Of a stretch of DNA of 64,000 nt, positions 9,772 through 36,799 are shown piece after piece. Below the pieces are notes generated by a model. It saw only the letters and a list, made by a program, of their open reading frames with translations. It was not told the origin of the DNA and did no database searches. The stretch is taken from contig OX337230.1 in the NCBI GenBank assembly GCA_946965045.2, positions 1,736,001-1,800,000 of the forward strand, read 5' to 3'. The first letter of the stretch is position 1; the number at the start of each line of letters is the position of its first letter. The position numbers and the translations under genes are program-made. The DNA comes from Epithemia pelagica. Lineage: Eukaryota > Protista > Bacillariophyta.

Positions 9772-10572
9772 CGCCCTTCTTCAGGGGTTTCGCGCGCGTC
9801 GACCTTCTTTCACCTCCACAAAGACAAGAATCCTACCCCCTAGCGGGGGTGAGTCATGAGGATTAGTGACCGGAATTTGATGAGCAGTTTGCACACCAAA
9901 AGCACGACACACATGCGACCCGACCACTCACCCCTACTTGGGGGTAACAAGAAGCCTTGGATCTGTTGCGCCACTAACTCTCCTTGACACTTGTCCTTCT
10001 TGGGACCGTCTTCGCGTCCAACCCGTCCGAAAAACGAGACTCTGAACAACGAGGCCTTTTTGCATGGTCTCGCAAATTTTCTCGTAGAGTCTCCGATGGG
10101 GAATGGGGAACGACCGACAATCCCAGAGTGGGCTGTGGCAAGAAACAATGTTCCGTCCTACTACATTTCACCATTCGACTGCAATTGCTCGAACAGATTG
10201 ATGGTTTGACATGTGAAGTAAACTTCTCTTGACGGACAGACAGTACTTTCGGATTTCATGCAGACTCCTCTCTTCTCTTGGTACCACCCAAACATCACGT
10301 CCTATTCGACTGAGTTCAGAATGAACGTGTCGGGTAAGCCGGCAGGCTAAGGGGGCTTCATGGGGCCTCAGAAATACATGGCAGATACATGATTGGGTTA
10401 GAAATTTCACAAGACATAGACAAGACAGCAAAATACTTAACGAAAACTCACACAAGACATGTCTTCTCTTACCTGTAGACATCGCGCGCCACGCGCAAAA
10501 AGCCACGGAATCTTGTCGACTTCCCCACGAAAAAGATGAAAACGACGAGGAGTTCCGCTCCAACACGATTCC

Positions 10573-13947: not shown

Positions 13948-14753
13948 GAAAAAATAAAAATAGTTAGTGAAATGAAAAAAGCAACATGATTCGGGCACCA
14001 GCAGTGCTTGAGCACTTACCATGGTGCTGTTACCGGAAACAGAAGAACGAAAGAAAACAGTATTGGCAAGAACACAACAACAGTAGTGAGAAAACCATCG
14101 TCCAAGAAATAATGAGCTAGAGGAAAATGAGCAACCACTTCCGAAATCCTGCCGTAGCTAGGCTTACCTTGTACCAGTGGTACGAGACTTCTACGCACTC
14201 TTTTGTGGTGAATGCTAATATCTTCGCTGGAGAAGCAATCGGGCATATGTGAGTATGACACTGTTTACCTTAAGCAAAAGACAGTCGCTTCAGGCACTTG
14301 CCGTGGACTCATACGTACTGTGGTAGTGGGGATCTGCCAAATCCCCTCCTTCCTGCTTCGTGGTCCACCACGCACTCACCACACATTGCACACATGGGCA
14401 GAAACAGTGACAAAGACAACAGCCAATTAGATCACATTCTGATAGCGGCAATCGCACGTTCTCGACGAAGGGAATCTTACCATAATTTCTTCCTTCTTTT
14501 TCTTTTTTCCTTTTCTTCTTCTTTTTTTCTCCTCCTTTTTTCCCCTCCTCTTCTGTAAGATCCCCCTATATTTTCCGTCATGGGTGGGAAAACAACAAAG
14601 ACTAGAAAGAATTTTTTTAGCTCAAGAGTCGAAATTCAGTACTTTTCACCAAAAGCTTCCCACGTTAGGCAGAAAACGCCGGGCCAACCCCTATTCAAAA
14701 CCATTCAGCCCCGAAGAAAAACAATGATCGAAGAACGGTCATCCATTGTTTTA

Positions 14754-14772
14754 TCAATCCATTAAATAAAAA
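14754..14772. repeat. Left target-site duplication of the LINE (19 bp)
   Basis: TCAATCCATTAAATAAAAA is identical to 23592-23610; the boundary inside the A run is slightly ambiguous. Confidence 0.92.
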
Positions 14773-14976
14773 AAAAATAATAATAACGCAATGATTAGTT
14801 TAACGATAAACTGCCGAAGGCTTTAACGTCGCTTGTGTACCTAGGGGAGACGAATCCCGCCCGGACAAGTCGACCAATTGAAACATGAAAAAAGGAGGAA
14901 ATGGAAGATGTGAAAAAGAGTAAAATGCACACAGTCGAGAACACAACACATCGAGAATAGGGGCGCTCCACCCGGG

Positions 14977-17900: not shown

Positions 17901-20778
17901 AGGCCCGAAGAGACGCCTCCCAAAAGTTGGCACTAGCTTGGAGTCGCTCGGCCACCTGAGTCGCTGTCGCGGAAGCAGACACACCATCGACGACCAGGTC
18001 TGTGTCGTCCACGAACGCATAGCCCACGAACAAAAAGGACGAGCCCGAATGGGGGGAGCGAAGAAAAAGACCATAACCGCGTTGCCTCATAGCATTGAAA
18101 ATCGGGGTACTGACGACCGCCCAAATTGCGGGTCCAGCCCCATTGCCTTGACCGATGCCTTGGACCGGAACCAAGTGCCCAGCAGCCGAGAAAGATGTCG
18201 TTGAGTCACCATACGCTGTACGAATAAAGTGGCGAAGGTGTTGGATCGGCCCCAACGACGCGTCTACCAAAGAGGGAGGAACACCACAGCGCTGCATGGC
18301 TAACCCCGCCGAGCTATGGCCAATACGGTCGTAGCACGACTTCGCGTCGTTGGAACACAGACCACCGGGACGGCGTGTTTGTCGCATAAGGTCAAAGGTT
18401 AGAACCTTGTTCAAACACTGGTAAATGGCGCTATGGCCTCGCCGACTGCCATACTGTTCTGGGGCTAACAAGGAATTCGCCTCGGCGTATCGCATCATCG
18501 ACCGCCCCATCAGCTTGTTGTTGTGGTTAAAGTCAGCTTCGTACAGAAGAATGGTACGAAGCTTGGAGACTTTAACCACGCCGGGTTTCTTCTCCAACAT
18601 TACATTCAACCCTTGTTGCCACCGGACCGGAAGGTACCCAGAAATAGAGGGAATCCGGCCCAATGCGGCGTCCACCGAACCCAAGGACGGCGAGAGACTA
18701 TTAGCCATGAAATGGCCAAAATGAAGACCTGAAGGACCGGAGGCGGTATACTCGTCCATCTTCTGCCACGAGGCACAGTAAGCCGGAGTACGAAAGTCAA
18801 GATCAAATGGATGAGGCGCGACGAGTACAGAGGGTCGGCGGTGGTGGGAGAGGTAAACCGCGGCTTCTGGGGAGATGAGATCAGCCACACGCGAAGGATC
18901 CCCCGAGGTCAATAACTGGTCGGCATAGGCCGAAGTACCGGTAGGCCCCAAAGCCTGAACAAGGGCGGGTTGTAAAAGATCCGTATCAGACGCCTGGCGG
19001 AACCGTCGATTGTTTTCCGCGAGACAACCAGTTTCCATCCCATCACGGTCTGTCCTGGTCACCCAAGCACCGTCCCATTCGCCGTCCACCCAGGCCCCGG
19101 GGCCCGAGGGGAGCTGAACTTCTGTGAGGCCTTTCCGAGACGTAGGAGCAAGAACTTGGCGGAGAGTCCGAGCATCCTGGCGCTGTTGCTCACGGCGGAG
19201 AAGGTTGGCTAAGCCGGATTTGGCCGAATCCCAACCCGCAGCGGCGCGTGCGTCTATCAGAGAATGGAGGAAGGCCTGCCGAGCGTGGGGAGCATCTCGC
19301 TTGAGCCGTTTGTATTCGGCCCAAGCCGTCTGCCTGTGCAGCAGGATTTCATCCACCGGCATGCACGAGGGAAGTTCAAGACCGGCTTTGGTGGCCAACC
19401 GACGGAGAAATTTCGGACTCACATGGCGCCCAATCGCCGAAGTGTACAGCCGGTCCCAGAAACGGTGAACTGCCAGTGCACGCGCTAAGATAGGAGACCA
19501 CGGAACAGCACCCGTCCGCAGTTTCCGGCATTTGCTGTCGGCCAGAAAGATGCCTTGAACACGGAGAGCATCGAGTCGTTCCCATTCCAGCGCCTGCTCC
19601 TCAGAGAGTGGCCCAGTTATTGACTGTTCCAGGAGAAAGGTACGGCGCTGAACATCATGCTGGGAGTAGAATTCGTGGAGGGTTGTTTGGTACCGACGAA
19701 CAACGCGCGGGTCCCGACACTGGAGGCGACGTGCGACGCGTGGAGCGACAGGGGCCGACATGACACCGAAAACCTCAACCAAGGGGATGTCTACCCACAG
19801 GGCGCGATGATCCCCAGGGGCCTCACCAAAGGAGAAATATCCGCACTGGCTGCCCGTCAAAGAGGGGGACGACCCGAACATAGCATCAATAGGTCGCGAC
19901 CCACGGTTGTGGGTCGGTGGTGCAGTAGCTCTGTCATGACGATGGAAGTGAAGGTTAGGCATGGAAAACGGAGCCATAGCTTGGTCGACCACGTTGGCTG
20001 GCGTCCACAGCAGGGGTTCGTTGGCGTCAAGGGCCAACAAGATCTGTTCCCCAGAATCGTAGGCCGACTGAAGCATCACCTGGAGGTCGTCGAGAAATAG
20101 TTGCCGTGGGTCCCCAAGTCGGGGAGGGTCGGAAGATTCAAAAACCCGAGAGTGCTGATTCCACGTTGAGCCCGCGTCACGGGGATTGAGAACCGGGCGA
20201 TACGCGCTGACAATGCGTAATAAGGAGCCATGGTGACCCCGTAAGCGCACCCAGACCCACCGGCCAAGGCCGGACGGGTCACTGCCCGACCCACACACCC
20301 GCCCTGTATGACTATCCCGGACCAACAAACCCACGCCACCGCGTTGTAAAGGGGAGGACCAATCGCGGTCAGTGTGCCACGCTACTTTGGTGAAGGTAGA
20401 CTGAAACCACGGGCGTACTAAATGGGAGAATTGTTGTTCTTCTTGTAGGTTGTGCCAGGCAATATTTAGTTCCGAAAGGCACAGGACATCGATTTTGTTG
20501 TCAATGATAAAAGCTTGGAGTTCCGCGTATTTGGGGTGTGTAGCCTGCAGGGGCAGACCAGACACATTTTGCGCCACCACACGGAGAATTTGATCTGATG
20601 GAGAAGTGGCTAGGGGGTCCCCCCACTCCTCAGAGACAGAGGGGGAGGAAAGGGGCCTTATTGCAGTCCTCTCGGTGTCCCGGGTCGTAAGGTGCGAGCG
20701 CCGGGACGAGGTGGAGGGACTAATGGCCCTGCCCCGTCGCCGAGGGCGGGGTCGACGGGGAAGCGGAAGAAGCCGAGG
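14977..20778 (-). CDS. LINE ORF2: AP endonuclease, reverse transcriptase, RNase H, C-terminal CCHC
   Basis: APE: QNVSGL, LSELN, SAYRP, LDANE, THNRGSRPID, GDHRAL. RT: KLRTILL, SNDAKSCYD, QGIGQG, FVDDTD. RNase H: FSDGS, RSELAG, TDSDS, HVKGHQD. CPRC..ESADHVLQC. The frame is open from 20778 but has no ATG before the endonuclease domain. Confidence 0.93.
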   Translation of the reverse strand, partial: PRLLPLPRRPRPRRRGRAISPSTSSRRSHLTTRDTERTAIRPLSSPSVSEEWGDPLATSPSDQILRVVAQNVSGLPLQATHPKYAELQAFIIDNKIDVLCLSELNIAWHNLQEEQQFSHLVRPWFQSTFTKVAWHTDRDWSSPLQRGGVGLLVRDSHTGRVCGSGSDPSGLGRWVWVRLRGHHGSLLRIVSAYRPVLNPRDAGSTWNQHSRVFESSDPPRLGDPRQLFLDDLQVMLQSAYDSGEQILLALDANEPLLWTPANVVDQAMAPFSMPNLHFHRHDRATAPPTHNRGSRPIDAMFGSSPSLTGSQCGYFSFGEAPGDHRALWVDIPLVEVFGVMSAPVAPRVARRLQCRDPRVVRRYQTTLHEFYSQHDVQRRTFLLEQSITGPLSEEQALEWERLDALRVQGIFLADSKCRKLRTGAVPWSPILARALAVHRFWDRLYTSAIGRHVSPKFLRRLATKAGLELPSCMPVDEILLHRQTAWAEYKRLKRDAPHARQAFLHSLIDARAAAGWDSAKSGLANLLRREQQRQDARTLRQVLAPTSRKGLTEVQLPSGPGAWVDGEWDGAWVTRTDRDGMETGCLAENNRRFRQASDTDLLQPALVQALGPTGTSAYADQLLTSGDPSRVADLISPEAAVYLSHHRRPSVLVAPHPFDLDFRTPAYCASWQKMDEYTASGPSGLHFGHFMANSLSPSLGSVDAALGRIPSISGYLPVRWQQGLNVMLEKKPGVVKVSKLRTILLYEADFNHNNKLMGRSMMRYAEANSLLAPEQYGSRRGHSAIYQCLNKVLTFDLMRQTRRPGGLCSNDAKSCYDRIGHSSAGLAMQRCGVPPSLVDASLGPIQHLRHFIRTAYGDSTTSFSAAGHLVPVQGIGQGNGAGPAIWAVVSTPIFNAMRQRGYGLFLRSPHSGSSFLFVGYAFVDDTDLVVDGVSASATATQVAERLQASANFWEASLRASGGALSPAKCHWYLVDHRWHDGQWRLVAPADSPATLRIRSPSGRVVPIERVSPMEARKTLGVWTAPDGSMKAEYAYLESKVKNWTERICVRTLPHHLVWMSLHTGIFKTLQYPLAATTFSEAECRSLCSPLLKIGLSRSHIVRSMPRPVVHGPQVTGGFAVPDLYVEQAIAHLTAFISFGHSESSITGFLLRNTLEFLQLELGTAGNPLALNFQDWSKCAVPTWCTSLWSFCSRYSVALSSPIPAIPILRAGDSFLMAAFWSAGIRNPTALARLNACRMFLRAFTLADITSVDGRYILLDAWTGSGPCSRRPHLEWWPRSPPTSALAWHEWREALMSTFGVEARFRRVVTTLGSWEVPSVLSSLALFCPHWNRLCLPRGDGIWQLAIARPSLRGRPVFDLSPKYLSVASLALYPPLFAADIYGPSASPILLYTDSVPVDLSVLFPPPPSTPVSFDWGCPVLAQVTPVWFIPPSDAVLSRIVSALHLGQLAAFSDGSARESVAGTCAWGIATTDSEVAVLAAGFRIPGPVAAHCSFRSELAGVIGIASLLRCVARWVPDLQGTVHFATDSDSVLGRVFRRPTPATVADHSWDLLSYCRFLLDGLPAIHWHGFHVKGHQDQGTAQLDIWARRNIYMDSCASAVYSLVSPNCFPSFPTAPLPSLSVGEKEVVSSLAATIREHVLRPPLVDHWQRLQRFGRAPSSSVDWAARSLALGQLQQNRRHWVIKHTATRSAVGVEMVRRRKWRDPRCPRCGAAVESADHVLQCSHPEAKALWHEALARLDRWMALRHTQPTVARFILDHLRAWVEDTEYVAPFTSVPGLREAVTDQAQMGWTAAVMGFWSNHWAEIQQAHYRFLGKRYSGRRWLALLIQQIWNTSWDQWEHRNAIYHANGALRLHAERQDAIRLAYSGPLRSTPLLRLLFRRPLERRLQDPPHIQQAFLRRLSTPIVSAAARSLRRQQRAFRSFFLQPRASSS

Positions 20779-23494
20779 TCAAAGAAGCGAGCTGGGAGCG
20801 AAGGTCTTGGGTCTGCGCCGAGTCGGGTAACGTGGAGAGCAGAGAGGTCAAAGAAGTCAAAAACGATTGAAGATTAGGGTTCTGGAAAAGGTGATCCGAG
20901 GGAGAGGAAATCGACGAGGCCGTAGTGGCCGCAGACGGGCCCACTCCGGGGTCGGGTGGGCCACGATTGGTGGTAGATTGCGAACCAGTGCTAGCAGTAG
21001 AGGCCAGCGAGGTGCCTTGGGGCAAGGTAGAAACACTGTCCTGATCCCCGGCAGCGTCGTGGGGCCGAACAAGGGGAGACGTAATGGCCGTCGTCAAAGT
21101 CGAGGCAGGAGTGGCGTCGTCGCCAAAGCCAGAACAATCCAACTCGCCATCGCCCGAATCAAAGACCCAACCGTTGTAGTCGTCTGCCGGGGAATCCACG
21201 GTCATGGTGGTGGGATTCCACACGGCACCCACTGCTCGATCGAGGGCATCCTTGCTAAAATGGCAGTAAAGAGTTTTTGCGAAAAAACGCTCACGAGCAA
21301 CATCCGACAAGTTAGGCACTTCTTCAGCCATCTTCCAACGTAGATATGGAATGAGAGCGATAATCATCGCCCGGGCTTCTTGTTCGCGGGCGGGGTGAAA
21401 GGCAAACTGCATGGCACCCTCCCCAATATGGCTGGGGTCCACCGAATGGAATAACTGATGACCATCAACCGTACTACGAATTTCCATCAATCGAGCGCGG
21501 AGGGTTAAATTGGTTTCCGAATCCGGCTGGTCGATCGAGTGTAACTCCCATGTCCGCATGCCCCTCATGTGGGTGCAGAATTGGAGTTGCCGAAGGCGGA
21601 GGGCAGCCACTTTCTCGCGAGTCCGGAGGTTCATGACATCCGACAACGGCCACACGAGACGCATTTTGATCCCTAACGGGAAACGCGTCGCAGTACGGGC
21701 ATACAGGTCAGCCAGACGACGTTTGGCCTCACGCTTGTGGAGACGGTTGACCTCAAAATGGAGAGCCTTCGCCATCTGGTCTGGAGGAATGGCACCCGCT
21801 TGACCAGTTTGGATGGTACGCCAACGCAGCCCGAGAGGGAATCCGAGCGCTTCTTCCAGTACCCGCTTGAGGGCCGGAACATCAATGGATTGTAGCGAGT
21901 ACAAACCCCAACCCACAATATAGGTAGATTCACATTGTAGTTGTCTGGGCCACAAACCATGGCGCTCGCTTTGAAACCACCAGGATAGGTCGTGCTTGAG
22001 TGACGTAAACGGCCGAGAATGCCCGAGATGAATGGAGGGGTAGACGAAGCCGCCAGTGGGTTTAGGCAAAGCGCGCGGGAAGTACCGCCTCATCCCATCC
22101 ATAGTAGCAGGGATATCGTCGGGTTTGGCCAGGGAGCGCCACTGGCGTTGACCGTTTTGTTGCGTGGTGTTGTCGCGATCCGACCATGGATGAATGACGA
22201 GAGTAGGATCGTACTCCCGCAATTTGGCAAAAAACGCTACCAAGGTAGACCGGAGTTCCGCGTCGGCATTACTAGAAGGCGCCAGCTGAAGCCGCATCTC
22301 GTAACGGGCCTCGACCGAGCGCGGCGGAAGAAGCTCTGTACGAAGATACGGATTGGTGGATTGGAGCGTCGGACCCGGGGGACGAGGAGCCGTCGATTGT
22401 CTGGGACGAGGGGCAATGCCCACCGAGGTGGGGACCGTCGCAGCCACCGGTTGGTGGACAAACATTTGAACGAAGGAGCCCTCCGTGTTGTCGGTGGCAA
22501 CAGTCGCCGCGTCGGACATGTCCGTATCCTCGCCAGGGGCCGAGGGGGCCGTGGCCGCAGCCCCACCGGAAGCCGTATCTTCAGCTTGTTGATTGCGCTC
22601 CGCCTGAAGCGCCTGTACTTCAGCATCCAAAAGGGCTTGAAAACCACCGCGATTGGGAGACGTCTGGGACGAGTTCTGAGTAGTGCGCTCACGACTAGAC
22701 TGGGACGACGAGGCGGGGGGACGAGCGGGGGGATTGGGTGCCAGAACACTGGCCATCGCCACCGCTGGAGCAGCCCTCTGGGAGCACGTCGTAACGCCGT
22801 CGGACACAAGTCGAGCTTCAGCCATGGGAACATCCTGCATAGAAGCCGATCGGGGGGTCCGAGATTCCTGGATGGAACGGCCGCGTCCACGACCGCTGCT
22901 CGATGAAACGCTACCCACCGGAGCGCGACCACCTCGACCTGGAACCAAAGGAGCCAAAGGCGTGGCTGTGGTGGTAGCCGGAGACGTGGGTGCCGAACGA
23001 TTGCGAGAGCGATGGGAGCGAGACCGACGAGAGCTCGGAGAACCACGTCCCGATGGCGACCGTTGTTGAGATTGCGACCGGCGGGCCCTGGAATTAGGAG
23101 GCGAACGGGGCGGGCGGATCGAGTCCGGAGCAATACCACGGCGGGGGGAGGAGTCGACAATGGGATCAGCTGGATCCTCTCGAGAAGGACCGGATTCGAC
23201 TTCCATGGCCGCCACTCCAGCATAAGTCGGTCGAATTGTCGACGCCGGAGCGGGCGCCGTCGAAGAACTCATGCGTGGACCGGAGGCCGGGCCAGAGGAA
23301 GCCGCTGGGGTTTCGGTAGGACGACGCGACGTCGCAGCAGAACGAGATGCCGAGTTGGTGGCCTGGGCGGGTGTCGCTGAAAAGAATTGAGTCACATTCG
23401 ATTGCACCGTGGCGGACGCTGAAGGAGAGGACGACGAATGGTTGCGACCATGGGATCTACCTCCCGCGGTAGGAGGAGAACGTCGATTCGTCAT
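20720..23494 (-). CDS. LINE ORF1 (gag-like)
   Basis: ATG at 23494 near the element 5' end; R/S/P-rich disordered N-terminus and an ordered central domain; no CCHC knuckle seen; overlaps the ORF2 open frame by 59 nt. Confidence 0.85.
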   Translation of the reverse strand: MTNRRSPPTAGGRSHGRNHSSSSPSASATVQSNVTQFFSATPAQATNSASRSAATSRRPTETPAASSGPASGPRMSSSTAPAPASTIRPTYAGVAAMEVESGPSREDPADPIVDSSPRRGIAPDSIRPPRSPPNSRARRSQSQQRSPSGRGSPSSRRSRSHRSRNRSAPTSPATTTATPLAPLVPGRGGRAPVGSVSSSSGRGRGRSIQESRTPRSASMQDVPMAEARLVSDGVTTCSQRAAPAVAMASVLAPNPPARPPASSSQSSRERTTQNSSQTSPNRGGFQALLDAEVQALQAERNQQAEDTASGGAAATAPSAPGEDTDMSDAATVATDNTEGSFVQMFVHQPVAATVPTSVGIAPRPRQSTAPRPPGPTLQSTNPYLRTELLPPRSVEARYEMRLQLAPSSNADAELRSTLVAFFAKLREYDPTLVIHPWSDRDNTTQQNGQRQWRSLAKPDDIPATMDGMRRYFPRALPKPTGGFVYPSIHLGHSRPFTSLKHDLSWWFQSERHGLWPRQLQCESTYIVGWGLYSLQSIDVPALKRVLEEALGFPLGLRWRTIQTGQAGAIPPDQMAKALHFEVNRLHKREAKRRLADLYARTATRFPLGIKMRLVWPLSDVMNLRTREKVAALRLRQLQFCTHMRGMRTWELHSIDQPDSETNLTLRARLMEIRSTVDGHQLFHSVDPSHIGEGAMQFAFHPAREQEARAMIIALIPYLRWKMAEEVPNLSDVARERFFAKTLYCHFSKDALDRAVGAVWNPTTMTVDSPADDYNGWVFDSGDGELDCSGFGDDATPASTLTTAITSPLVRPHDAAGDQDSVSTLPQGTSLASTASTGSQSTTNRGPPDPGVGPSAATTASSISSPSDHLFQNPNLQSFLTSLTSLLSTLPDSAQTQDLRSQLASLTSASSASPSTPPSATGQGH

Positions 23495-23591
23495 GGTGAG
23501 AACACACACGTAGGATCACACGTAGAACTTAGTAGGAAGGGACTATAGGCATAAGTAGTAGGCTTAGCAAAAAGATCGACATCGAAAAAGT

Positions 23592-23610
23592 TCAATCCAT
23601 TAAATAAAAA
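23592..23610. repeat. Right target-site duplication of the LINE (19 bp)
   Basis: Identical to 14754-14772. Confidence 0.92.
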
Positions 23611-24000: not shown

Positions 24001-24789
24001 TTAGACGAGATCCACACGCGGAAAATAGTTCAAGTACTGATGTTCCTGTACAACGGCATCCATCAATCCCACGTTAAATTCAAGCTCCAATGTCACGATA
24101 GCATTGTCGTCGAAAATCGTTTCAACCACAGTCGCATTAATGCCCAATTGGTCGCTCGTCCCCAATTTTTTGAGAATCATGAAACCAGGGTCAACCCCCG
24201 GTAGGTAGGTCTTGTACAACTCAGCCATCACATCACGAATCTCCCAGAAACGATTAACATGAACAATCAACTCACCCATCAAATTGTTGGTCTTGACACG
24301 GCAAGGGAGCCAGTCGTGAGATGGACTACCAAACGTGACAGGGCGTTGAATACCAGACGGAAAGCGATTACGAAATCCTCCCTCAATCGTCGACAACTTG
24401 TCAATCGGAAAGGGTCTGGACGTAGTAGGCGGACGAAAATAGATCTTGTAGCTACCCTTCAATACCAAATCTTGCTCAACCGTAGGCAATCCCCAGCTGT
24501 GTCCTTCACTCGAATCCACTGACCACCGAACTTGCATGATTCGTCCGTCATGACCAAGAGACTCACCACCATCGATCACCTGGTTTGTCTGTTCATCTGC
24601 CAAGCCAATCAAAGTTTCCGGAACCTCCACCGCTTCGGAAACGCGAAGCCGAATGACGTCGAGTGGAGTGTCTTGCATGCACATTGCACCGAATCCCCAC
24701 GTCGGCGAAACTTTAACAATAAACTGCGCCATCTCGTCGTCGGCCCCAACAACAAAGTGCCGCGACGGCAAAACAACCAACTGAACCAT
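24001..24789 (-). CDS. Helitron cargo protein A, two putative ubiquitin-like (beta-grasp) domains; paralog of 35464..36231
   Basis: First ATG 24789. Aligns by eye over its full length with the 35464 ORF (LIGL, VRW.V, FPSG...PVTF, WL.CRV.TN.L.GE, AELYK..GVDP.FMILKK). Confidence 0.72.
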   Translation of the reverse strand: MVQLVVLPSRHFVVGADDEMAQFIVKVSPTWGFGAMCMQDTPLDVIRLRVSEAVEVPETLIGLADEQTNQVIDGGESLGHDGRIMQVRWSVDSSEGHSWGLPTVEQDLVLKGSYKIYFRPPTTSRPFPIDKLSTIEGGFRNRFPSGIQRPVTFGSPSHDWLPCRVKTNNLMGELIVHVNRFWEIRDVMAELYKTYLPGVDPGFMILKKLGTSDQLGINATVVETIFDDNAIVTLELEFNVGLMDAVVQEHQYLNYFPRVDLV

Positions 24790-25092
24790 AGTCTTGACAA
24801 CTGAGGTAAGTGCACAAAAGCAGACTGTGGTGGACACGAAAATTTATGAGACAACTTCGTCTCTAACCTTTTCCTCTATTCTGTTACCAAAAAAACCCAC
24901 CCGCAAACCTATTTGACAGAAACCAACCGTAACCACACCTCCACGGAGGTCGTGCCGTGGAAACTCGTCACGGTGGACAGAAACCGACCGACACGACAAC
25001 CAACCGAAAACCCACCCAACAATCAAACACATTTCGACGACTGACCGTGCCATGGCTATAAAGCTACGTTGGTTGTTCCATTGTTTTGTTAC

Positions 25093-25758
25093 ATGTATCC
25101 TCGTCGTGCCATCTACCGTAACCGTGCCGGCTTTTTGCGTCATCCAGGCATGCCTGGTTATCGTGCACGCACAACGATCGACGGCGGCTGTTCCTTCCAA
25201 CCCGTGGATTGTTACGTGCGTGTGAGTGATACGGTCGACTTCCGTACCTGCGTAGTCGAAAAGTACTCCACGGCAATTCACGTTTTACGCACCATTGCAA
25301 AAAAGATGCGGATTCCACTATGTGACATTCGCCTAACCAAGCAAAACGGAAAACGGATTGCTATGAAGGCATATGTGTACGAAAACGACAGCGATCTCAC
25401 TAACGGTGCTATTACACTGGCTATGGTGATGGGAAGTCATCGTGATTTCAGCGAGACTTACCTTCCCGAGAATTTTTCGCTTTCGTCAACACCAGAATGC
25501 AAACAGGAGAGCGACAATGAGCAAGACGACGAGGATGAGGAAGACGATTCCGAAGAGGAGCTAGATGGGCGAGACCATTAGGACGAGGAAGATGATTCAG
25601 AAGAAGAGAAACAAGACGGGCAAGACCATGAGGACGATGATTCAGAAGAAGATGATGATTCCGTTGTGTTGGTTGACAAGAACGAACAAATGGAGAGCAA
25701 TGGAGGCAAGCGAGACTCGTGCCGATCGTCGCGTTTGGTTGAAGAGGCGCATGTCTGA
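25093..25758 (+). pseudogene. Helitron cargo B: putative ubiquitin-like domain plus acidic tail, with premature TAG at 25579-25581
   Basis: VDCYVRVSD...STAIHVLRTIAKKMRIPLCDIRLTKQNGKRI fits a beta-grasp pattern. The acidic repeat continues in frame after the TAG, and the sister repeat reads GAC CAT GAG where this one reads GAC CAT TAG. Confidence 0.6.
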
Positions 25759-26395
25759 TTGTTGCGGCTCGTCTCCAGTTGCGGCGGATCAAGAAACCAA
25801 ACACCATTGTTTTTTGACGTGAAAAATTGAGTACCTTTCCGCCGTCTGTCGTCTTTACCACGTCTCAATTTAGATGACAGTAGTTTCTCTTGCATCACAT
25901 CTTCTTGTTCATTTCCATAGGGATCTTCTTGTTGGGATCTTCTTGTTCATTTCCATAGGGAGTGAGAGCCAAATGGACAACGGCAGCCTTGAGAGCCTCC
26001 ATTTGGCCGTATCGCCATTGTTCCCCGATCTTTTTGGACAATCCTTTGCCAATTAGGCATCTTTGGTCTTTGGCATGTCGTCGATGATGGATGGTCAACA
26101 AATAACGCTAAACGCACGTCTCGTATTCTTCCATGTCCACGTAGGTGTCTCTCTGTCTCTCGCTTTGTCAATTGTCAATGGTGCCAACCAAAGATCCGTC
26201 ATCGCTCCCATGTGCAGAGCGAGAGGAAAATGAAAGTAGGAGAATCACCGCGAATCGCAATGAAGGACAACCACCTGTATCTGTATGCAACCTTATAAGC
26301 ACGAAACACTTGCGGCGCCGGCCTTAAGACTTAAAGATTAGATTACTACAACAACTAATCAAAGGCCAATCTCTCCGTGCTCTCCATACAAGACC

Positions 26396-27178
26396 TCAGC
26401 CTTGAGTCATGCCGGGATATCCGAACTTAAAGCGCGCGACATTCGAATAACGACCGTTACGGTCGACGCTGAAAACCGAGTCATGTTCCACGTGTTCACC
26501 ACCTTCACCACCGTCAAAAAACTGGGAATAAAAATCCGTCGTGGGACTCCCTTCCACGGCCAAGTAGCTATCGATTATTTCCGCCACGTGCTCATCTGTA
26601 AATAAATGATCAAGCGCGCGAGGCGGGCTCTGAGTGTGGTCGAACTCCGCCTTGTAAATATAGTCCTTTTCCCAAGTAACATTGGGGTTCTCATTGTCCG
26701 CGCGCTCAAGAATCTCGATTAGCTTCTCCGCGAATTCTTTCTTGAGCTGCGCGTGCGCAGTGCTATCAACCAACGGATCGTGCTCGGTAGGCGGGCACGC
26801 GACAACACATGGCCAGAAAAAAACACCTTGGTTCGGCTTGGGGGGGCCCTTCACCAACGGAAGGTTCTTCTCGCGCGACACACGACGGTGTAGGGTCGTG
26901 ATGCGCATGTCATACGATTCGAGATCGCCTTGCGCACTATTGAGAATTTCGTCAGTGACTGGCTTCAGATATCCCGATTCTTCAACACCCGCCTTCTGAA
27001 GCTTAAGATACCCAACAATAAACGCTCCCTTCGGACCACACTGTTCGAGGTGAACTTCCGTCACCTGTGGCCCAGCCGCAGATGCACGGACGTCCTTCAC
27101 TTTCTTCTTCCCTTTCGAAGCAAATGGACTCCTCTTGAGCTTAACGGGAGTAACCACTCTGTGTGCACCCTGGGACAC
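26396..27178 (-). CDS. Helitron cargo C: unknown 260-aa protein with basic NLS-like N-terminus
   Basis: ATG-initiated ORF of globular-looking composition, with KLKRSPFASKGKKKVK at the N-terminus; no family recognised. Confidence 0.65.
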   Translation of the reverse strand: MSQGAHRVVTPVKLKRSPFASKGKKKVKDVRASAAGPQVTEVHLEQCGPKGAFIVGYLKLQKAGVEESGYLKPVTDEILNSAQGDLESYDMRITTLHRRVSREKNLPLVKGPPKPNQGVFFWPCVVACPPTEHDPLVDSTAHAQLKKEFAEKLIEILERADNENPNVTWEKDYIYKAEFDHTQSPPRALDHLFTDEHVAEIIDSYLAVEGSPTTDFYSQFFDGGEGGEHVEHDSVFSVDRNGRYSNVARFKFGYPGMTQG

Positions 27179-27458
27179 ATTGGATGTTTCTGTTGCGTTG
27201 GTCTACAAAAATGGGGAAGGTAAGTAAGCGCCGGGCCAAGCACCATGGTTATTGCACGACGAACGGAACTCACCATGCTGTCTTACTCAACTTTCTCCAG
27301 ATAAGACACAAATTGTTCTCAGCCGGATTTATGAGATCAACAGGAAATGAATGCTGTTAAGGTTGATTGTCGTGCCATCTCCATCAGTCCATTAACGTCG
27401 AATCCAGGTCGAGTCGTACCGTGGACTGCAACGGTCCATTTATGTCATCATCAGGACA

Positions 27459-27755
27459 CACAACAATTTACACACATACCCAACAATCAACCACGAATGC
27501 AGCAGCGTGAATCACCGGACGAAGTGCCAATGCAATCGGAGACACCACAAACAGCACACAGATTCAACAATCAACCACGACCGCAAGAGGACCGTGGAAC
27601 ACAACCGACAACAATTTACACACATACCCAACAATCAACCACGAATGCAGCAGCGTGAACCACCCGACGAAGTGCCAATGCAATCGGAGACACCACAAAC
27701 ACCAACAGATTCAACAATCAACCACGACCGCAAGAGGACCGTGGAACACAAGAGC
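27459..27755. repeat. Tandem duplication with 148-bp period and CAACAATCAACCACGA sub-repeats
   Basis: ACAATTTACACACATACCC starts at 27463 and 27611. The sub-motif occurs four times in the array, with a variant at 27901. Confidence 0.85.
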
Positions 27756-28591
27756 GTGAAACACCACGCCGTACCGGGGGAGATGCCAATGCTGACGGAG
27801 ACACAACAACGCGATGCACAGCAATCAAACTACCTAGTCCGTTCCCATCAGCCCACGGCGTGCAGTCTATTTTCACGATCTTTCAAGCACCACACATATT
27901 CAACAATCAAACACGACCGCAGCGTGAAACACAACACTAGTACAGTCTGTGGTACTATTCTAGCGTGGTGATTAACGTAGTAGTCCGGCGTGTTGGTTGT
28001 GTGCCGTCCACGTTTTTCTAGTACATTACGGATTGGAACTGATCAGCATCCACTCCATCCATCTTGTCTCATTATTTCTTGCTTTCATTATTTTGTTTTC
28101 CGGTGCTGGTTCACAGTTCACAGCTCACAGCATAATTTGTCGGTTGGTTGTTGGTACTTGGTACGAAGTTTATCACACGTATTGTTGTGTAACCGCGTGT
28201 TCTTGTGGCGGCTGAGTAACCACGTGTAACCACGTGTGTTTGTGTGAAACGATCTGAGGAAGGAAGTGTGTCGCTTGATTCCGTGTGTGAGTTCTGTGTC
28301 TTTGCTAACAAAATCCGGGGAACCATCGGTGGTAACCAATCCAACCGGCAACTGGATTTCCAATCCCTAGAGATTGTTGTACACCCCCATCCCATACCTT
28401 GAGTACAAGTAGACCGAAAGGTTGAAAAGAGGGCGATCCTTGCCAGACCGGCTGGATACCGTCAGGGGGGCGGAGTTTAAAGTACTCGACAGGTACAACT
28501 CCGCGTGCTACGGCACATCATTGCGCACTAACGAAACATCTGTCGCGGCTCTGCTCGCCACATAGTCGGTACTCTTTTCTGCATCACGGAC

Positions 28592-28745
28592 AGGGCGACT
28601 GATTCCGAGGGACCGAAACTGAATCTCGGTTGTCTTACGACATCGTCTGTCGTCGGCCGTGTGAAGAGGGCGACTGATTCGCGATCTGAACGGAAATCTG
28701 AATCTTGGTTGACCGTGGACGCCGTCTGTTGTCGGCCGTGTGGAG
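28592..28745. repeat. Two degenerate tandem copies of an approx. 75-bp unit
   Basis: AGGGCGACTGATT...GAATCT.GGTTG...GTCGGCCGTGTG at 28592 and 28667. Confidence 0.75.
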
Positions 28746-29042
28746 TACGGGCAAGGGACTGGCGATCCCACAGTGATTGGGCAAGACTCAAGTATCAAGA
28801 CTACAAGGACAGGCTCAGTGCGTGGATCCCTAACAGGTGAAGCTGCCAGTCACGTGACATTATTGTCTGTGATATACTGACAACCTGGATTACTACGGTG
28901 TGAGGGGCCCGCGTTTCGTAATTAGTCGGGTACTACGGCAACGCGGCTGTTGGAAAAGAGGCTTCCTCAATAGTTGTTTCTGACAACAAAGGAATTCCCG
29001 CCACAGCTTTCGTGCTTACAGCGACTTACGCTGAGTAACATA

Positions 29043-29706
<664 letters not shown>

Positions 29707-29713
29707 CAGCGAC

Positions 29714-32700
29714 ATGCATTTTGTTTATTTGATTTTTAGCTTCATTTTAGTCATGAATGCAGATGTTAGGGCAAGATCTCAGGGCATTAGAAATGCAGAA
29801 TCCACGCGCAATGGGTTGTTGTACACAGACGCACAGGGCAACTCCAACGCAAAAATATGCTGTGTTTGTGACACATTGATTCCATACGGTGATGAGAAAT
29901 GCTTGACCATACAGGACATCCGTCACAAACGTTTGTGTTCTGTGTTGTCGAAGAAGAACTTGGGTTTGTTGGAGTATGGGATTAAACAGGAAGGGCAGGT
30001 TGCTATCCAGAAGCACTATACACAGCTCTGTTATACGACTAGGCAAAAGGAGTATAAGTTTCTGAACAATTTGGTTTTGTCCCCCAAATCATACCCCGCC
30101 AAAAAGGGCACAAAAGAAGGCCTTGGATGCTGTAGGGCTTGTCACTCGCACCTTCAGAACATGAAAAACAAGAAAGGTGACTGCACCCCACCACGCTATG
30201 CCATTGTTAACGGCCTATCGATTGGAAAGCCTCCTGTGTGTTTGACAGACCTTAATGAGGTTGAATTGGCTATGATAGCGCCCGCTAGGACAAACAAACA
30301 CATTTTTTCATTTACCGCTGGTAGCCATAAATCAATCAGGGGATGGCATTCGCTGTACTATAATGACCTTGATGCCGTCAATGGCGTTGTTAATTGGTGT
30401 AATGAGGCAACCACACAACGACACCAGCAAGGAGAAAGCAATGATAGCTTGGGTGGGGAAGAAAACGCAGAAAAGAAGTTATACATTCCTACAATCGCGG
30501 TGGTATTGTGCGGCCCGTTTACGTCGGCCCAGCGTGCAAAAGTGAGGGAGAAAACCGAAGTGAGATGGGAAAAAATGCAAAATGCACTGGTATGGTTAAA
30601 AGCAAATAACCCACTATATGCAGAATATGATCTCCCAACAGACGCAATGCTGAAACCAATTTTCCTTGACAAAGCAGAGATTGTTCCTGAATCGTCGTCA
30701 AATGTCGAGCTGGTTTTTGAAATCAATGCGGTTTTCCCGGACTCTGATGAACCCAAAACAGGTAATGGTGGGTTCGCGACTCAGCAGGAGTTCAGAAATG
30801 CTTCTGTAGAAAATTTAGTAACACCAGAGTCTGACAAGCAAGCAACATTGATATCCCGGCCAACCCCACATCTACTCCGTGATTATGAGGGTGACAACTT
30901 GATTCGTGCGTTCCCCCTTCAGTTTCCCTACGGAATTGGCGGTCGTAATTCGGAGGGTGAATCGCGGCAGGGGGTTGGGTATCTGAAACATTTGTCTATG
31001 TTAGCCCCATCACGTTTTCATGGGGCAGCCGTTATATGTGTCCTTCATAATATGTTTGAGAGACAAAGAATGGTTGCCAATACTTTCCTTAGGGTGTCTG
31101 ATTCACAAGCACAGTCGTTTCCAGATATTTCGACAGAGGCAATTGAGGAGGCCTTGCGGATGATGCAGGACAACGTGTCATGTTCCACCCCGGGATACAT
31201 GTTTCTTCAAAAGCTGAGAGCGATTACTTCTTCCATGGGCCATACGTCGGGTGCGGCAAAAAGGGCCCGACAGAGAATGTTTTCGATGATTTCGCATCAT
31301 GGTTTGCCGTCTTTGTTGTTTACCATTACACCAGAGGATGCAATTAACTACAGAATCAGGGTAATGTCGACGGGCGGGACGGGCGAGCGTCCACCACCCG
31401 ATCCATTCACTTGTGATTTCAGTGAACTTGCAAAATATGCTAAGGAATGTAAGGAAATTAGGGTTGATAATCCAGGGCTGTGTGCATTTGATTTTGAGAA
31501 TGTACTCCGGATTACAATCGCACATTTGATAGGGTGGGACGAAACAGAAAAACAAACCCTGCTTTGGAATATTTGGAGACATAAGTGGGTGGTGTTACGC
31601 AGTTGAGGAACAGGGACGAAAAACCCTACATGCACATTTTCTGCTGTGGGTGAAAGATTGGGCAAAATTGCTAAATGGGCTATCAGATGAAAGCCTCAGG
31701 GATACGTTCAAGAAGCAAATGGAGAAATATGTGTCAGCCGTGTCAAGTGCGGAATTGCATGGTAACGATTGTCAACCGGTGTGCACAAATGATGGCTGCT
31801 CTGGGTCTGTCTTGGAGCACTGCAGTGCGCAGGACTTGCGAAATCTCCGTACACGGGCAGGAAAGACGGCTTTCGGTGGGAAACAAATTATGAAGTGTGG
31901 GACCTGTGACAAAGGCTACTCAAGTGAGGATCTGGTAAAAATCCTACTTGACCCAATGTTTTCTCTGCAGGGGGGGGACGATGAACCGTTTTGGCCACAT
32001 GTTTCTTCACAACACACAAAATATCAGCTACTTATGGAGTTTGCATTGATGCGGCATAATCATCCGTTTGTTCCGAAGATCCTCGACGATAAACAAGCTG
32101 CAAGGTTTGTCGCAGCTTTGAGGAACCTACATAATTTGAATCACTGTACAGCATGTTTCAAAAAAGGGGGAGAATGCCGGATGAAGATTTCCAACCTTCC
32201 CTTTGAAAAAACCACTTTGGTTTTTGATGAGCATTACACTAATTGGTACGACTGGAAAGGGAACAACCGTGCACGACAGCTTTTCCATGTAGGTCATAAG
32301 CGTTCCAGAGCAGATGTTATGATGAATATCCATAATCGTGCGGCAAGTAATCTGTTTGCTTGTAACACCAATGTGGTTGCGGGTGTCGGTGGTGGTAGTG
32401 TCATGTATATGACATGCTATGTGTTGAAGAATACGCAGAATGAGGACAATGAGCATTTTGCATCTGCCGCGAAGCATATGGTTCGTAAAATGAAGACGTA
32501 TTTAAGCAACGATTTAGAGGACAATGAGAATCGGGAGAACAACACTGCCGATACTGATAATGACAGAGTCCTGCACGGTATGCGTGGGCTAATTGGTGCT
32601 GTTTTGCTTTCTACGGGGGCACACGTATGCAGTGCACCAATGGCAGCGTTTTTGTTGAGGAATGAGTCTCGTTTTGGGTTTTCGCATGAATTTGCATATG

Positions 32701-35165
32701 TTGATCTCAGGGATTTTGAGTCAGACAAACTTGAGAAGTTTTCGTGTGATGCCTATGACGGCGAGGTTTTCCTGAAATCGTCTGTGGCTGATTACTTATA
32801 TAGGCCACATGATTTAGAGGGTGTGTGTCTTTATGACTTCCTCTGCAGTTATTCTGTTGGGCGTGCAACCTCTAAAAACCGTGGAATGGAGTGGGTAGCA
32901 GAGCATCCGTCGCGGGGTAATTTGGTGTTGAAAAAAAATAAGAAAGACAAAATTCCACTTGTTTCCTTTCTGGATTTTGTTGATACAAAATTTTTTGGGG
33001 ACAGGTCAATTGACAATGTTGATGCATCGGGAGATGTTGTTCTTGATTCTGGTTTGGCAGCCATGGAATCTTATGCAAAGAAGGCCTGCCTTCTTTTTTA
33101 CCCCTTTCGGCAGACAGGAGATCTTAGATCAGGGAACGGGAGATATCTGGGGAAATTCCAGCAGGGTTTGGCTGGTGGTATCATTTTAGAACAGCATTTG
33201 ACGGTTCTTTCAAACATACAAGACTGTCGTAATAGTCTTCATTGCGGGAGACCGAGCGATTCTCTAGAAAGAGTGACAGAGCAACCATCGCTTGTTGTTG
33301 GTGATGCAGGTGATTCTGAGGAAGAGTGCGAAACAGGAATCGACCCTGGCATGGAAGCAGTTTTTGATGAATTGATTTCGTGCCTGGATGTGAGTCGGCC
33401 GATGTTAAGAAACGCTGATGGATTGTTGGCAGTTGATAGCAGGTTTATTCGGTCATGTGGGACAAACAAATGTGGTGAAAACTTGGTGGTCTGTCCGGAG
33501 TTGCCTGACTCGTCGCCATCAGTGTTTCGTGTCAGTTCGGATGAGCAGGCAGACAGTACTACCTTTGTACAGCATGCAAGTGTGGATGAGGAGGTATTTG
33601 AATCAAGAAGAATCACTTATAGAAGTTTGCATGAACTGTCTGTCCGTTTTCGTGAGCGTGTGATGGGTGTAGATGCTAACAGTCACCTGCAGGCAACTGG
33701 GACATTGGAGAATATTCGGGCGTATGCAGATGTGTGTTTTGGATCTGATGTGGATCAAAAAAGAGCTTTTGAGTCAATAGTAGCTGCGTTTGTGCTGGAA
33801 TTATATAAGGAGGCAAATAGAACACAAGCAGCAGTCGACACCGAAGATGAACTGGAGGCAAACCACCAGAATACGAGGTTTCTTAGTTTACGCAAAAAAG
33901 AATTGGAAAAAGTGAATAGAGGTCATCAATACATCCCGTTCCTTTCTGGTGCAGGTGGTACGGGGAAAAGCCATGTTTTAAAATCGGTTGTCCGATATGC
34001 CAAGAGCATGTGCCGCAATTTGAGTGTTAAGTACGACAAGCGGACTATTGTTGTGACCGCGCTTACTGGTGCGGCTGCTGTTGGTATAAATGGTGAAACA
34101 ACCCATAATGCCTGTGCTATAAATCAAGAGGTTGATGGAGAGGTCGAGGAGTGGACAAATGCGTATATGTTGGTTGTGGACGGTGAACTGCTTTTAAGGT
34201 ATAGAGATATTGGGCCTGATGCAATAGATCTGGATAAATTGAATACACGTGTTGTTGGTAGTCCTGGGGGGCCACGAGAGAGCGACATACCGTCTACGGC
34301 AGATTATGCCACAAAGTCCAACATTGATCGTGCGGCTATTAACGATGCCATCTTTTGCAAACATTTGGCAGAAACACATTCAAAGGATCCGGAAAGGGAC
34401 CCCCCTTTGCATACGATTTGCGTTCGTGCGTCTGACTTGCGTTGGAAGAAGCCAAAGACGAGAAGGGACTATGTGGACTTTAATTCGGCCAGTAAAGACA
34501 TGTTATATGCGTATTGTGGTGAAGGACATGTTAAGAGTAAAGATAATAAGCATTACGACCCATTGTTGAAATTTTACTATGGTCGTCCATTGATGATTAA
34601 TGACAATATCGATGTTGAGAGGTGTGTTGCTAATGGGGCAATGTGCACTTTCCGTGAAGTTGTGTTGATGCCGGGAGTTACAGTTGGTGATATGGAGAAG
34701 ATATGTATTGATGGCTACTTTGTTTGGTGTGTTAGTGTGTCACAAGTTCGGGGTTTGAGAGTGACAATGCAAGATGGTGTTGAAGGTTTCGTAGTGAATT
34801 TGGAGGCTACAAAAGTTACAGCGACTGTTCAGTTTCTTCTGCCGGAATTTGGTAGGAATGTGAGGATTAAGAAGACTATGAGGCTGAAGCAGTTTCCGAT
34901 TAATGTATCAAATGCACGAACAGGACATAAATTGCAGGGAAGGTCGTTGCGTCATTTGGTGATTAGTTCATGGGACTATACGGATGATTGGGTGTATGTG
35001 TGTTTGTCTCGTTGTGCTACTTTGAATGGTTTGTTTTTGCGACAGCCGTTAAATTTGGACAAAACAAGAGGCATTTCGGAAGAGTGTGCGAGATTCTATG
35101 AGTTGTTCAGGGAGACTAAACAGCTACCAGAAAAGGTTGTTCTGTTTGAGGAGGAGAGGGGATAG
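29714..35165 (+). pseudogene. Helitron RepHel (HUH Rep endonuclease plus Pif1-family helicase) with a frameshift and an internal deletion
   Basis: PPRYAIVNGLSIG..P..L.DLNEVE, FPLQFPYGIGG, PSLLFTITP, GIFG...AVEEQGRKTLHAHFLLW (HUH), YMTCYVLK (two Tyr), Walker A GAGGTGKS, ALTGAAA, and C-terminal NARTGHKLQG / YVCLSR. One extra base near 31550 splits the ORF, and the sequence after Walker B VVD jumps straight to GELLLRYR. Confidence 0.9.
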
Positions 35166-35463
35166 TACTGCTTTTGATGTTTTTGGATTGACACCAGTCC
35201 ATTTCCGTCAAAAATTTGATTCGTGAGGCCCAGTTCTATCATCCGTCGGCCTTGCGTCGTTCCTTGTCCGTTCCAATCGATTGTTTGTGTACAAATCAAA
35301 CATGCATTGATGGTTTTGGATTGACAGTCCATTTCCGTCAGAAATTTGTGTCGTGAAGTCCGGTTCTATCATCCGTCATCAGACAGCCAAATCGGGCTTT
35401 CATTGGTCTCATAAATTCTGTGAGATAGATTTCTGTTGGGTTGTTGGTTAAATAGTCAAGATC

Positions 35464-36231
35464 ATGTGCCGTTATATTGAATTGTCCTTGGATAGTTGTG
35501 ATTCTGAGACAAGCGATAAGTCAGTGGAGTTTCAGGTTCAGGTTGGTCTGTCGGATCGCTGGCGGTTCAAGGGAGTGTGTCCACGGAACACACGGATGGC
35601 TGTGCTTCGCCAGAAGCTTGCTGATGCATTGGAAGTTGAGGCTTGTTTGATTGGGTTAGTCTGTTTCACGACAAATCGGGCGGTCAGTGGTCATGAATGT
35701 GTCGGTGACCAGTGCTGTGTGGGAGTTCGGTGGGCTGTGAATCCAAATGAGAGGAATGATACCTGGGGGTTCGAACGTGCAACACCAGATGACTTCGTGC
35801 TGCGTGATACCTACAATAGATATTTTTGTTGTGAGGCCAACGAGTATGTTGATCTGTTGAATGAGTGGGAGCGTGGGTATGATTGTTCCTTTCCGTCTGG
35901 TTGCGAATGGCCGGTCACGTTCCAAGAAAATGTGGTTAATTGGCTGTCTTGTCGTGTGGCTACGAATGCATTGTTAGGGGAGTTCACCGTCATTATTAAC
36001 TGTTATTGGAAGGTTCGCCATGTTAAAGCGGAGTTGTATAAGTTTTTGGGGGTCGATCCAACTTTTATGATTCTTAAAAAGTCGGGAGAGAGTGCGGAAT
36101 TAGATGACGATGCAGCGGTGATCCAAGAGATTTATGGAGAGAATTGTACGGCGGTTTTGCAGTTGTCCTTGGATGTTGAAATGATGGTCAAGTTGGTGGC
36201 AGAGCATCCATTGTTGTGTTTCTTTCGTTAA
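35464..36231 (+). CDS. Helitron cargo protein A', two putative ubiquitin-like domains; paralog of 24001..24789
   Basis: CRVATNALLGEFTVII..WKVRHVKAELYKFLGVDPTFMILKKSG..ELDDD follows the ubiquitin pattern [41 protein letters not shown].QLED. No terminal GG. Confidence 0.72.
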   Translation: MCRYIELSLDSCDSETSDKSVEFQVQVGLSDRWRFKGVCPRNTRMAVLRQKLADALEVEACLIGLVCFTTNRAVSGHECVGDQCCVGVRWAVNPNERNDTWGFERATPDDFVLRDTYNRYFCCEANEYVDLLNEWERGYDCSFPSGCEWPVTFQENVVNWLSCRVATNALLGEFTVIINCYWKVRHVKAELYKFLGVDPTFMILKKSGESAELDDDAAVIQEIYGENCTAVLQLSLDVEMMVKLVAEHPLLCFFR

Positions 36232-36799
36232 ATCGATTTGGTCATGTGAGCGGGTAGACAGGGGTCTTGAGTGTTGCTGTATGGTTTGGATGGCATAATG
36301 TTACTCTTGAAATTTAATTTATTCTACTAGTCATGATTGTTATGGAACTTTAGAGTCCCATCTCATAGTGGGTGGATTTCAGGTTGTTTTGATCTACTCT
36401 TTCCTCTTCTTGTTTTGACGTGGACCGACGTGGTGAGGTGGTTGTGATTTATTGTGGACGCCAGCCCCAGCCGTCATGGGAGGTATGGGTGGGTCAGGTT
36501 GGCGTGGTAGGTTATGAGCCCTTTTATGTTTGGGTGATCGTTGAACTCAGACGTTCTATCCCGAAGGGTACTGTCCTATGATGTGGAATAGGAGTAGTTG
36601 GTACCTCTAAGGTTAGCCTACCTATACCACGGGACATTCTGCTTCGTCGATTCTTGAGTCGCGAATTCAGTCACCCTAAATCGAGAATCTTCAATCTCGT
36701 CCACTAAAAAATGGCCAATGCATTATTCTAATCATCGACATTGACAAAGGTGACCCATCCAACCCACGCTAAGACAAGTAGAATAGAATTTCAATCTCC

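Follow-up and report, generated by a model that had tools for sequence, protein, structure and literature searches.

The window analysed here is a stretch of 64,000 nucleotides (nt) from the diatom Epithemia pelagica (assembly GCA_946965045.2, contig OX337230.1, positions 1,736,001 to 1,800,000 of the forward strand), and the coordinates given below are counted from its first letter. Positions 10305-36575 of the window hold a single decayed copy of a rolling-circle transposon of the Helitron2 type (HLE2, without endonuclease), in which four open reading frames (ORFs), named A to D, accompany the transposase gene RepHel. Among this cargo, A and B are related to each other, are placed on either side of RepHel and are predicted to encode two consecutive domains of the ubiquitin/SUMO-like (beta-grasp) type. 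The element's own features, with protein lengths in amino acids (aa), are as follows:

10305..10355 (+): left (5') terminus, with the 5' arm of the asymmetric terminal inverted repeat (10307-10318); common to 7 loci, begins TTCGACTGAG, with unrelated sequence before it
14582..14772 (+): segment of the Helitron that separates two nested insertions; 95-98% identity to other copies
24001..24789 (-): ORF A, starting with the ATG at 24789 and of 262 aa; protein predicted to be tandem ubiquitin/SUMO-like (beta-grasp); intact in 7 of 7 copies examined
25093..25581 (+): ORF C, small protein with an acidic tail, truncated to 162 aa by a stop at 25579 (219 aa elsewhere)
26396..27178 (-): ORF D, conserved cargo protein of 260 aa; open in 9 of 9 copies aligned, omega (ratio of nonsynonymous to synonymous change) 0.32
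29753..35165 (+): RepHel transposase gene (DUF6570, Helitron_like_N, PIF1 helicase), broken, as seen by Pfam and by comparison with intact copies
35464..36231 (+): ORF B, 255 aa, paralogue of A; intact at 3 loci, deleted or truncated elsewhere
36542..36575 (+): right (3') end, with the subterminal inverted-repeat arm (36542-36553) and the terminus ...GGGTACTGTC at 36575; 5 loci are identical up to 36575 and then diverge

Identity and copies of the element

Related loci were fetched from one public assembly (ENA ERZ21939226), which contained each protein. L006 is the window's own locus (99.98% identity) and L001 is the other haplotype of that locus (99.3-99.5%); L003, L005 (also fetched as L012 and L014), L007, L008, L009, L010, L011 and L013 represent other insertions, whose flanking genes are unrelated. 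At least ten loci of this genome have the ends of the element, the left end being common to seven of them and the right end to five, with divergence beginning immediately outside and with unrelated flanks. Homology to the other copies covers positions 10305-10355, 14582-14772 and 23592-36575 of the window, so that the element has about 13.2 kb of its own sequence, split by the two nested insertions, and the bounds of 24001-36231 proposed in an initial annotation of this DNA were too short.

Helitron2 elements are defined through a terminal inverted repeat that is asymmetric, where the 5' terminal sequence is found inverted about 20-40 nt inside the 3' end (PMC5148889). Here, 11 of 12 bases agree between positions 10307-10318 and the reverse complement of 36542-36553, and the 3' arm, an inverse repeat of the first 12-14 bases of the element, ends 22 nt before the terminus. 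No target-site duplication is seen at the other loci, and a CCTAT repeat flanks the window copy only. As to insertion between T and T, the junction bases are identical in every copy and, being so, do not separate element from target. Regarding secondary structure, the DNA fold of the 3' 140 nt is no better than that of shuffled sequences (z -1.3), with no convincing hairpin.

The Pfam scan gives RepHel the domain set DUF6570, Helitron_like_N and PIF1, with weaker matches in the broken window copy and with E values of 6.3e-16 for Helitron_like_N and 8.2e-19 for PIF1 in an intact RepHel of 1886 aa. DUF6570 is reported to be almost exclusive to HLE2 (PMC11417382). In addition, no Exo_endo_phos (apurinic-apyrimidinic endonuclease) domain is present in the 1886-aa RepHel at E values up to 1, the missing endonuclease domain being a feature that separates Helitron2 from Helentron. 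Because of the asymmetric terminal inverted repeat, the DUF6570 domain and the endonuclease-less RepHel, the element is assigned to the Helitron2 type (HLE2); the recognition of a Helitron in the initial annotation is thus borne out by the domains of RepHel, the shared termini and the inverted repeat. Intact RepHel ORFs of 1886-1901 aa are found at four loci (L005, L007, L010 and L011), and the element has been recently active.

As a separate observation, the first bases past the 3' terminus are GAC at two of the five loci (L003:16029-16033 and the right junction of L005), creating a junction GTCGAC that echoes the 5' start of the element, TTCGAC. This could be due to chance, to a target preference or to a slight read-through of a joined-end intermediate.

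The paired cargo genes A and B

In several respects the element follows the known Helitron2/HLE2 elements, such as FoHeli of Fusarium (PMC5148889; PMC11417382), having a RepHel with Rep, PIF1 and DUF6570, a terminal inverted repeat that is asymmetric, no target-site duplication, several copies whose ends are identical and accessory ORFs at fixed positions around RepHel. The difference is in the cargo: there is here no RPA, OTU, UCH, Ulp1, tegument-type deubiquitinase, HSP20 or other domain named in the survey of Helitron cargo, and four Pfam-less ORFs are present instead, two of them predicted to be tandem ubiquitin-like proteins. Their positions are fixed in the family, where A, C and D are upstream of RepHel and B is downstream.

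ORFs A and B are found exactly where the initial annotation had placed them and, as it had claimed, they are diverged homologues, with 39% identity over 243 residues (BLASTP, E 7e-55), and face outward around RepHel, A reading to the left end and B to the right end. No further copy of A or B was found in the window by tblastn. A and B are old paralogues. The possibility that they are host genes merely flanking a Helitron is ruled out, as both are inside the termini common to 5-7 loci with unrelated flanks, and so is a large inverted duplication of the ends at the DNA level, since only a 33-nt match of 79% is found, inside the coding regions. As also stated initially, neither protein has a Gly-Gly ending: A ends in ...FPRVDLV and B in ...CFFR, and the only GG of A, which B does not have, is located in the linker (residues 137-138). 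Consequently, the mark of a conjugatable modifier, a C-terminal Gly-Gly ending the last beta-grasp domain, is absent from both A and B.

Selection on the cargo was estimated across the copies from changes counted relative to the consensus, using seven copies for A. The omega values are 0.38 for A, 0.39 for B and 0.63 for C, besides the 0.32 of D given above, and the N-terminus of RepHel has 0.39. When A to D were pooled, omega was 0.40 in frame against 0.97 and 1.02 in the out-of-frame controls, where the same substitutions were scored in the two wrong frames (Fisher p 0.008). The cargo genes are under the same purifying selection as RepHel, so that they are of use to the element rather than being fragments captured at random. 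Moreover, the divergence between A and B (dN 0.57 and dS 1.59, the latter near saturation) gives a ratio of about 0.36. Both results uphold the initial suggestion of selection, which had been drawn from the two frames staying open despite their divergence. Between the haplotypes of the window locus, B differs by seven nonsynonymous changes and one synonymous change, as expected for neutral decay after insertion.

For a better understanding of these proteins, A was modelled with AlphaFold2 from an alignment of only 6 sequences. The model has a mean predicted local distance difference test score (pLDDT) of 47 (61-75 in domain 1 and 50-59 in domain 2) and a predicted template modelling score (pTM) of 0.38, and its secondary structure shows the order beta-beta-alpha-beta...beta twice (residues 20-93 and 163-239), with an extra C-terminal helix past the last strand. 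This agrees with the beta-grasp topology, beta-beta-alpha-beta-beta-(short helix)-beta, on a low-confidence model in which domain 2 is the less well tested one. A Foldseek search against the Protein Data Bank (PDB) with this model gave matches that, in essence, all belong to ubiquitin, SUMO, ISG15, further ubiquitin-like proteins or linear di-ubiquitin, at E values of 3e-5 to 1e-3, with target template modelling scores of 0.76-0.83 and a root-mean-square deviation (rmsd) of about 2 A, di-ubiquitin aligning over both domains. In VIA-align, which is exhaustive and independent of Foldseek, residues 18-94 of A match SUMO, Smt3 and ubiquitin with Z scores of 8-9.1, domain 1 having an rmsd of 1.4-2.6 A over 69-77 residues. 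A shape search with A in the predicted-structure library of the ESM Atlas led to the Rad60-SLD, SUMO, HUB1 and UBX clusters, and a language-model feature search, which is taken as a lead only, to the ubiquitin and Rad60-SLD families (0.84-0.87).

At the level of sequence profiles, the best match is Ubiquitin_2, with an E value of 0.045 and 14.7 bits against a cut-off of 23.1, in register, for domain 2 of B only. The Rad60-SLD family (PF11976) has no Pfam match to A or B at E values up to 10, the search of A and B against PDB sequence profiles gave nothing beyond a chance BTB match (E 0.29), and the hhalign comparison of domain 1 with domain 2 was not significant. Overall, a tandem beta-grasp fold is taken as likely for A and B. 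The initial annotation had seen two beta-grasp segments in each protein from hydrophobic patterns, and this part is supported by AlphaFold2 with Foldseek, by VIA-align and by the ESM Atlas, on a low-confidence model and with no significance in profile searches.

The two genes did not have the same fate in the family. B is intact at the window locus, in L007, where RepHel is also intact, and in L008; in L003 it has lost 250 bp internally, and in L005 947 bp by a nested deletion, while gene calls and cluster membership show no B ORF for the contigs of L009, L010, L011 and L013. A is kept in every copy. In a tree of the copies, based on 6.5 kb of shared sequence, L005, L009, L010, L011 and L013 form a young clade, 0.2-0.5% apart, with three members having intact RepHel; L003 is sister to this clade, and the copies that keep B are on older branches. 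Together with the nested deletions, the tree indicates a stepwise loss of B in the last lineage to multiply. As A was kept everywhere, the two proteins are probably redundant. The mirrored arrangement of A and B is ancestral and not required: the two-ended layout described initially is real in the window, but it is not essential to the element, B being truncated in one copy and almost wholly deleted in the youngest lineage, whose RepHel genes are intact.

Other cargo, decay of the window copy and nested insertions

The initial annotation had described ORF 25093, named here ORF C, as a third ubiquitin-like segment with an acidic tail. The ORF and its acidic tail were recovered, but the ubiquitin-like segment was not confirmed, as the model has a pLDDT of 39, is too poor for use and gave no ubiquitin-like match in Foldseek or VIA-align. 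The hhalign comparison of ORF C with the A/B profile was not significant (E 0.22), and its hydrophobic pattern is compatible with a beta-grasp but no proof of it. In other copies, C continues for 57 residues past the stop of the window (window 25579-25770; L003:5573-5743), the full-length tail having a second acidic run and then VVLVD, which, by its sequence, looks like a SUMO-interaction motif. One public read set does not have the 6 bases containing the stop of ORF C.

Regarding ORF D, the gene calls have 234-270 aa at some loci. No relative was found in Pfam, in the Atlas or in the databases: the Atlas feature search gave no usable match, and the word-indexed search returned only the protein's own cluster. 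A remnant of a related, older element is present in the same genome, at L004, a decayed tandem array with a period of about 8.3 kb and no RepHel within 10 kb. There, a third and more distant A-like N-terminus (P0004, 49% identity to A) adjoins a diverged D-like ORF with 48-62% identity (L004:8400-11200 and 18800-20100).

The window copy of the Helitron is dead, due to a frameshift and a helicase deletion in RepHel and to the premature stop in ORF C. Compared to the intact 1886-aa RepHel of L005, the window gene has a frameshift near 31540-31650 (near codon 598) and a 242-bp deletion in the helicase at 34180, with the downstream ORF staying open. The RepHel of the other haplotype (L001:4044-9702) has different lesions, with frameshifts near codons 810 and 1385. 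Since the lesions differ between the haplotypes of one insertion, the decay followed the insertion.

The left arm was further split by the two nested insertions, both missing from all other copies:

10356..14581 (+): nested insertion 1, 4.2 kb, with an ORF of 1124 aa (10573-13947, +)
14773..23591 (-): nested insertion 2, a non-LTR (long terminal repeat) retrotransposon of 8.8 kb

In the other copies, the sequences matching window positions 10355 and 14582 are 5 bp apart. The 1124-aa ORF of insertion 1 has no significant Pfam family, only a weak PAZ_3 match (E 0.011), and TCATGGG is found at both ends of this insertion. The retrotransposon has an ORF1 of 929 aa (20720-23509) and an ORF2 of 1867 aa (14977-20580), the latter with a YxDD reverse-transcriptase motif and a weak match to an apurinic-apyrimidinic endonuclease (APE)-type Exo_endo_phos domain (E 6.6e-4, below the Pfam cut-off). 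It looks like an intact and young insertion in the left arm of the Helitron, young because a target-site duplication of about 18 bp, CAATCCATTAAATAAAAA, is present at both junctions.

Some further details were noticed in and around the element. Between ORF C and ORF D (window 25802-26190), L005 and L010 have about 520 bp of extra sequence compared to the window, an indel that indicates part of the young subfamily. Just upstream of RepHel, a trinucleotide microsatellite of the AAC/GTT type extends over about 0.7 kb (window 28926-29730), its length varying among copies and haplotypes. To the right of the element, the nearest host gene (window 36800-38368) encodes 522 aa, with a TMEM65 domain fused to a GAF domain.

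Proposed role, alternatives and significance

The favoured reading, to which we give a probability of about 0.6, is that of an HLE2 element with selected cargo, where A and B may be non-conjugatable tandem ubiquitin/SUMO-like adaptors or decoys, comparable to the paired SUMO-like domains of Rad60, Esc2 and NIP45. The initial annotation had suggested that such mimics may counter host silencing or proteolysis. The role in the SUMO/ubiquitin pathway is one that we infer: the binding partners of A and B would be host E2 enzymes, SUMO- or ubiquitin-binding factors, or ubiquitin receptors, and, as the outcome, the transposition machinery would be protected or assisted, or SUMO-dependent silencing would be blunted.

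The nearest host counterparts are the proteins of the RENi family (Rad60, Esc2 and NIP45/NFATC2IP), which have two tandem SUMO-like domains (PMC549199, PMC2946365, PMC7849368) and assist the SUMO E2 enzyme as cofactors in silencing and in maintaining the genome (PMC549199, PMC7849368), a plausible model of how A and B might work. As predicted for A and B, they possess two consecutive ubiquitin/SUMO-shaped domains with no Gly-Gly and are non-conjugatable, and the Rad60-SLD cluster is among the structures nearest to A. They differ in being host-encoded, A and B being transposon-encoded; moreover, A and B have neither a detectable sequence similarity to them (no PF11976) nor a long N-terminal region bearing SUMO-binding motifs. 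The predicted A and B also share with ISG15 and FAT10 the presence of two beta-grasp domains per chain, ISG15 and di-ubiquitin being among the best structural matches. Both ISG15 and FAT10 end in Gly-Gly and are conjugated, whereas A and B have no such end, and the model of A has the additional C-terminal helix.

Among transposons, Helitron-like elements repeatedly carry deubiquitinases of the OTU, UCH, Ulp1 and tegument types, some of them active (PMC11417382, PMC9741609). The VTD domains of fish Helentrons, for instance, act on ubiquitin and NEDD8, and their supposed role is to shield the transposition proteins from being degraded (PMC11417382, PMC9741609). These deubiquitinases and SUMO proteases are enzymes that remove the modifier, whereas A and B resemble the modifier itself and have no catalytic domain; still, a modifier-shaped adaptor or decoy would fit the theme. 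An analogy, of role only, was drawn in the initial annotation with the VANC anti-silencing proteins of the Arabidopsis VANDAL elements, which are likewise accessory products of a DNA transposon and act on host control to the element's advantage. VANDAL elements belong to a different transposon superfamily (Mutator-like), and we know of no ubiquitin-like fold in VANC. Concerning Helitron cargo itself, a Pfam-based survey counted 20 accessory domains as stably included, of which 19 are named in its text, none of them ubiquitin-like (PMC11417382). Likewise, no link between a Helitron and a ubiquitin-like cargo gene was found in the papers searched, in agreement with the initial annotation, whose author knew of no such module.

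Several points weigh against the favoured reading. No ubiquitin-family profile (PF00240, PF11976, PF14560) has a significant Pfam match to A or B, either as whole proteins or as single domains, and the model of A has the low confidence described above, with its 6-sequence alignment. As the beta-grasp is common in proteins unrelated to ubiquitin signalling, the function proposed for A and B goes beyond the modelled fold and is pure inference. Few substitutions are available per gene, and only the pooled test of selection is significant. In addition, the most successful lineage has lost B, and the element can thus do without at least one of the two. When 1.84 billion representative proteins were searched exhaustively by HMMER with the joint A+B profile, only fragments from the same genome were returned, the A-like N-terminus P0004 among them, and word-indexed searches with A and B returned only each protein's own cluster; as these searches gave no relative from another genome, neither a conservation across species nor a linkage to RepHel outside this genome can be shown. 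Finally, the expression of A and B is unproven: the three read runs over the window behave as genomic DNA, their longest contigs being of hundreds of kb, and say nothing on it.

It is rather unlikely that A and B, while truly having the beta-grasp fold, stand outside ubiquitin/SUMO signalling as generic interaction modules (RA/RBD-, PB1- or UBX-like), which would target another host factor, such as the Cdc48/p97 segregase or a small GTPase, or would be a scaffold of the transposition complex. That VIA-align has an RA domain and UBX domains among its best matches (Z 8.0-9.1), that the Atlas lists FAF1/UBX and Cobl/RBD clusters and that both sequences lack a ubiquitin or SUMO signature is in line with such modules. 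However, most top matches in the three structural searches are ubiquitin, SUMO or ISG15 proper, and the alignment of di-ubiquitin over both domains, as well as the language-model features leading to ubiquitin and Rad60-SLD, argue for the ubiquitin/SUMO side.

The open frames of A, B, C and D could also reflect the youth of the copies, all four ORFs then being passengers captured from the host with no benefit to the element. Helitrons are well known for gene capture (PMC11417382), and the continued proliferation after the deletion of B, the 7:1 ratio of changes between the B haplotypes and the omega of C, which shows no clear constraint, would all agree with it. This explanation is nonetheless improbable, as A and B have both stayed open through divergence to 39% identity with a dN/dS of about 0.36, the in-frame omega is the same as for RepHel and much lower than in the out-of-frame controls, the diverged remnant at L004 keeps the order of D then A at 49-62% identity, and no host original was found among the 1.84 billion representatives. 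That a poor model produced the fold as an artefact, A and B being orphans of another or of no stable fold, is very improbable: the low pLDDT and pTM, the shallow alignment, the lack of significant Pfam and PDB-sequence profile matches and the search tool's own warning that low-confidence models can yield meaningless matches would speak for it, but almost exclusively one fold family was returned by Foldseek, by the exhaustive aligner and by the separate predicted-structure library, the better-modelled domain 1 superimposes closely, the independent language-model search agrees, and the poor model of ORF C, taken for comparison, had no ubiquitin-like matches.

Under the reading of A and B as adaptors or decoys, the system is favourable for direct tests, in a diatom, of binding partners and of effects on transposition or silencing, having small proteins, a young element and several intact transposases, and natural variants with and without B exist side by side. 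The case of A and B also indicates that Pfam-based surveys of transposon cargo miss themes that are visible at the level of the fold. Why Helitron-like elements need enzymes that remove ubiquitin or SUMO is a standing question, and modifier-shaped cargo would offer a second, independent handle on it. The broader proposal, that a eukaryotic DNA transposon encodes its own non-conjugatable ubiquitin/SUMO mimics, which would engage the conjugation or recognition machinery of the host so as to protect the transposition proteins or to blunt SUMO-dependent silencing, is tentative and for now doubtful; if true, it would mirror the deubiquitinases that other Helitrons carry, and would be the first description of a modifier-like decoy from a transposable element.

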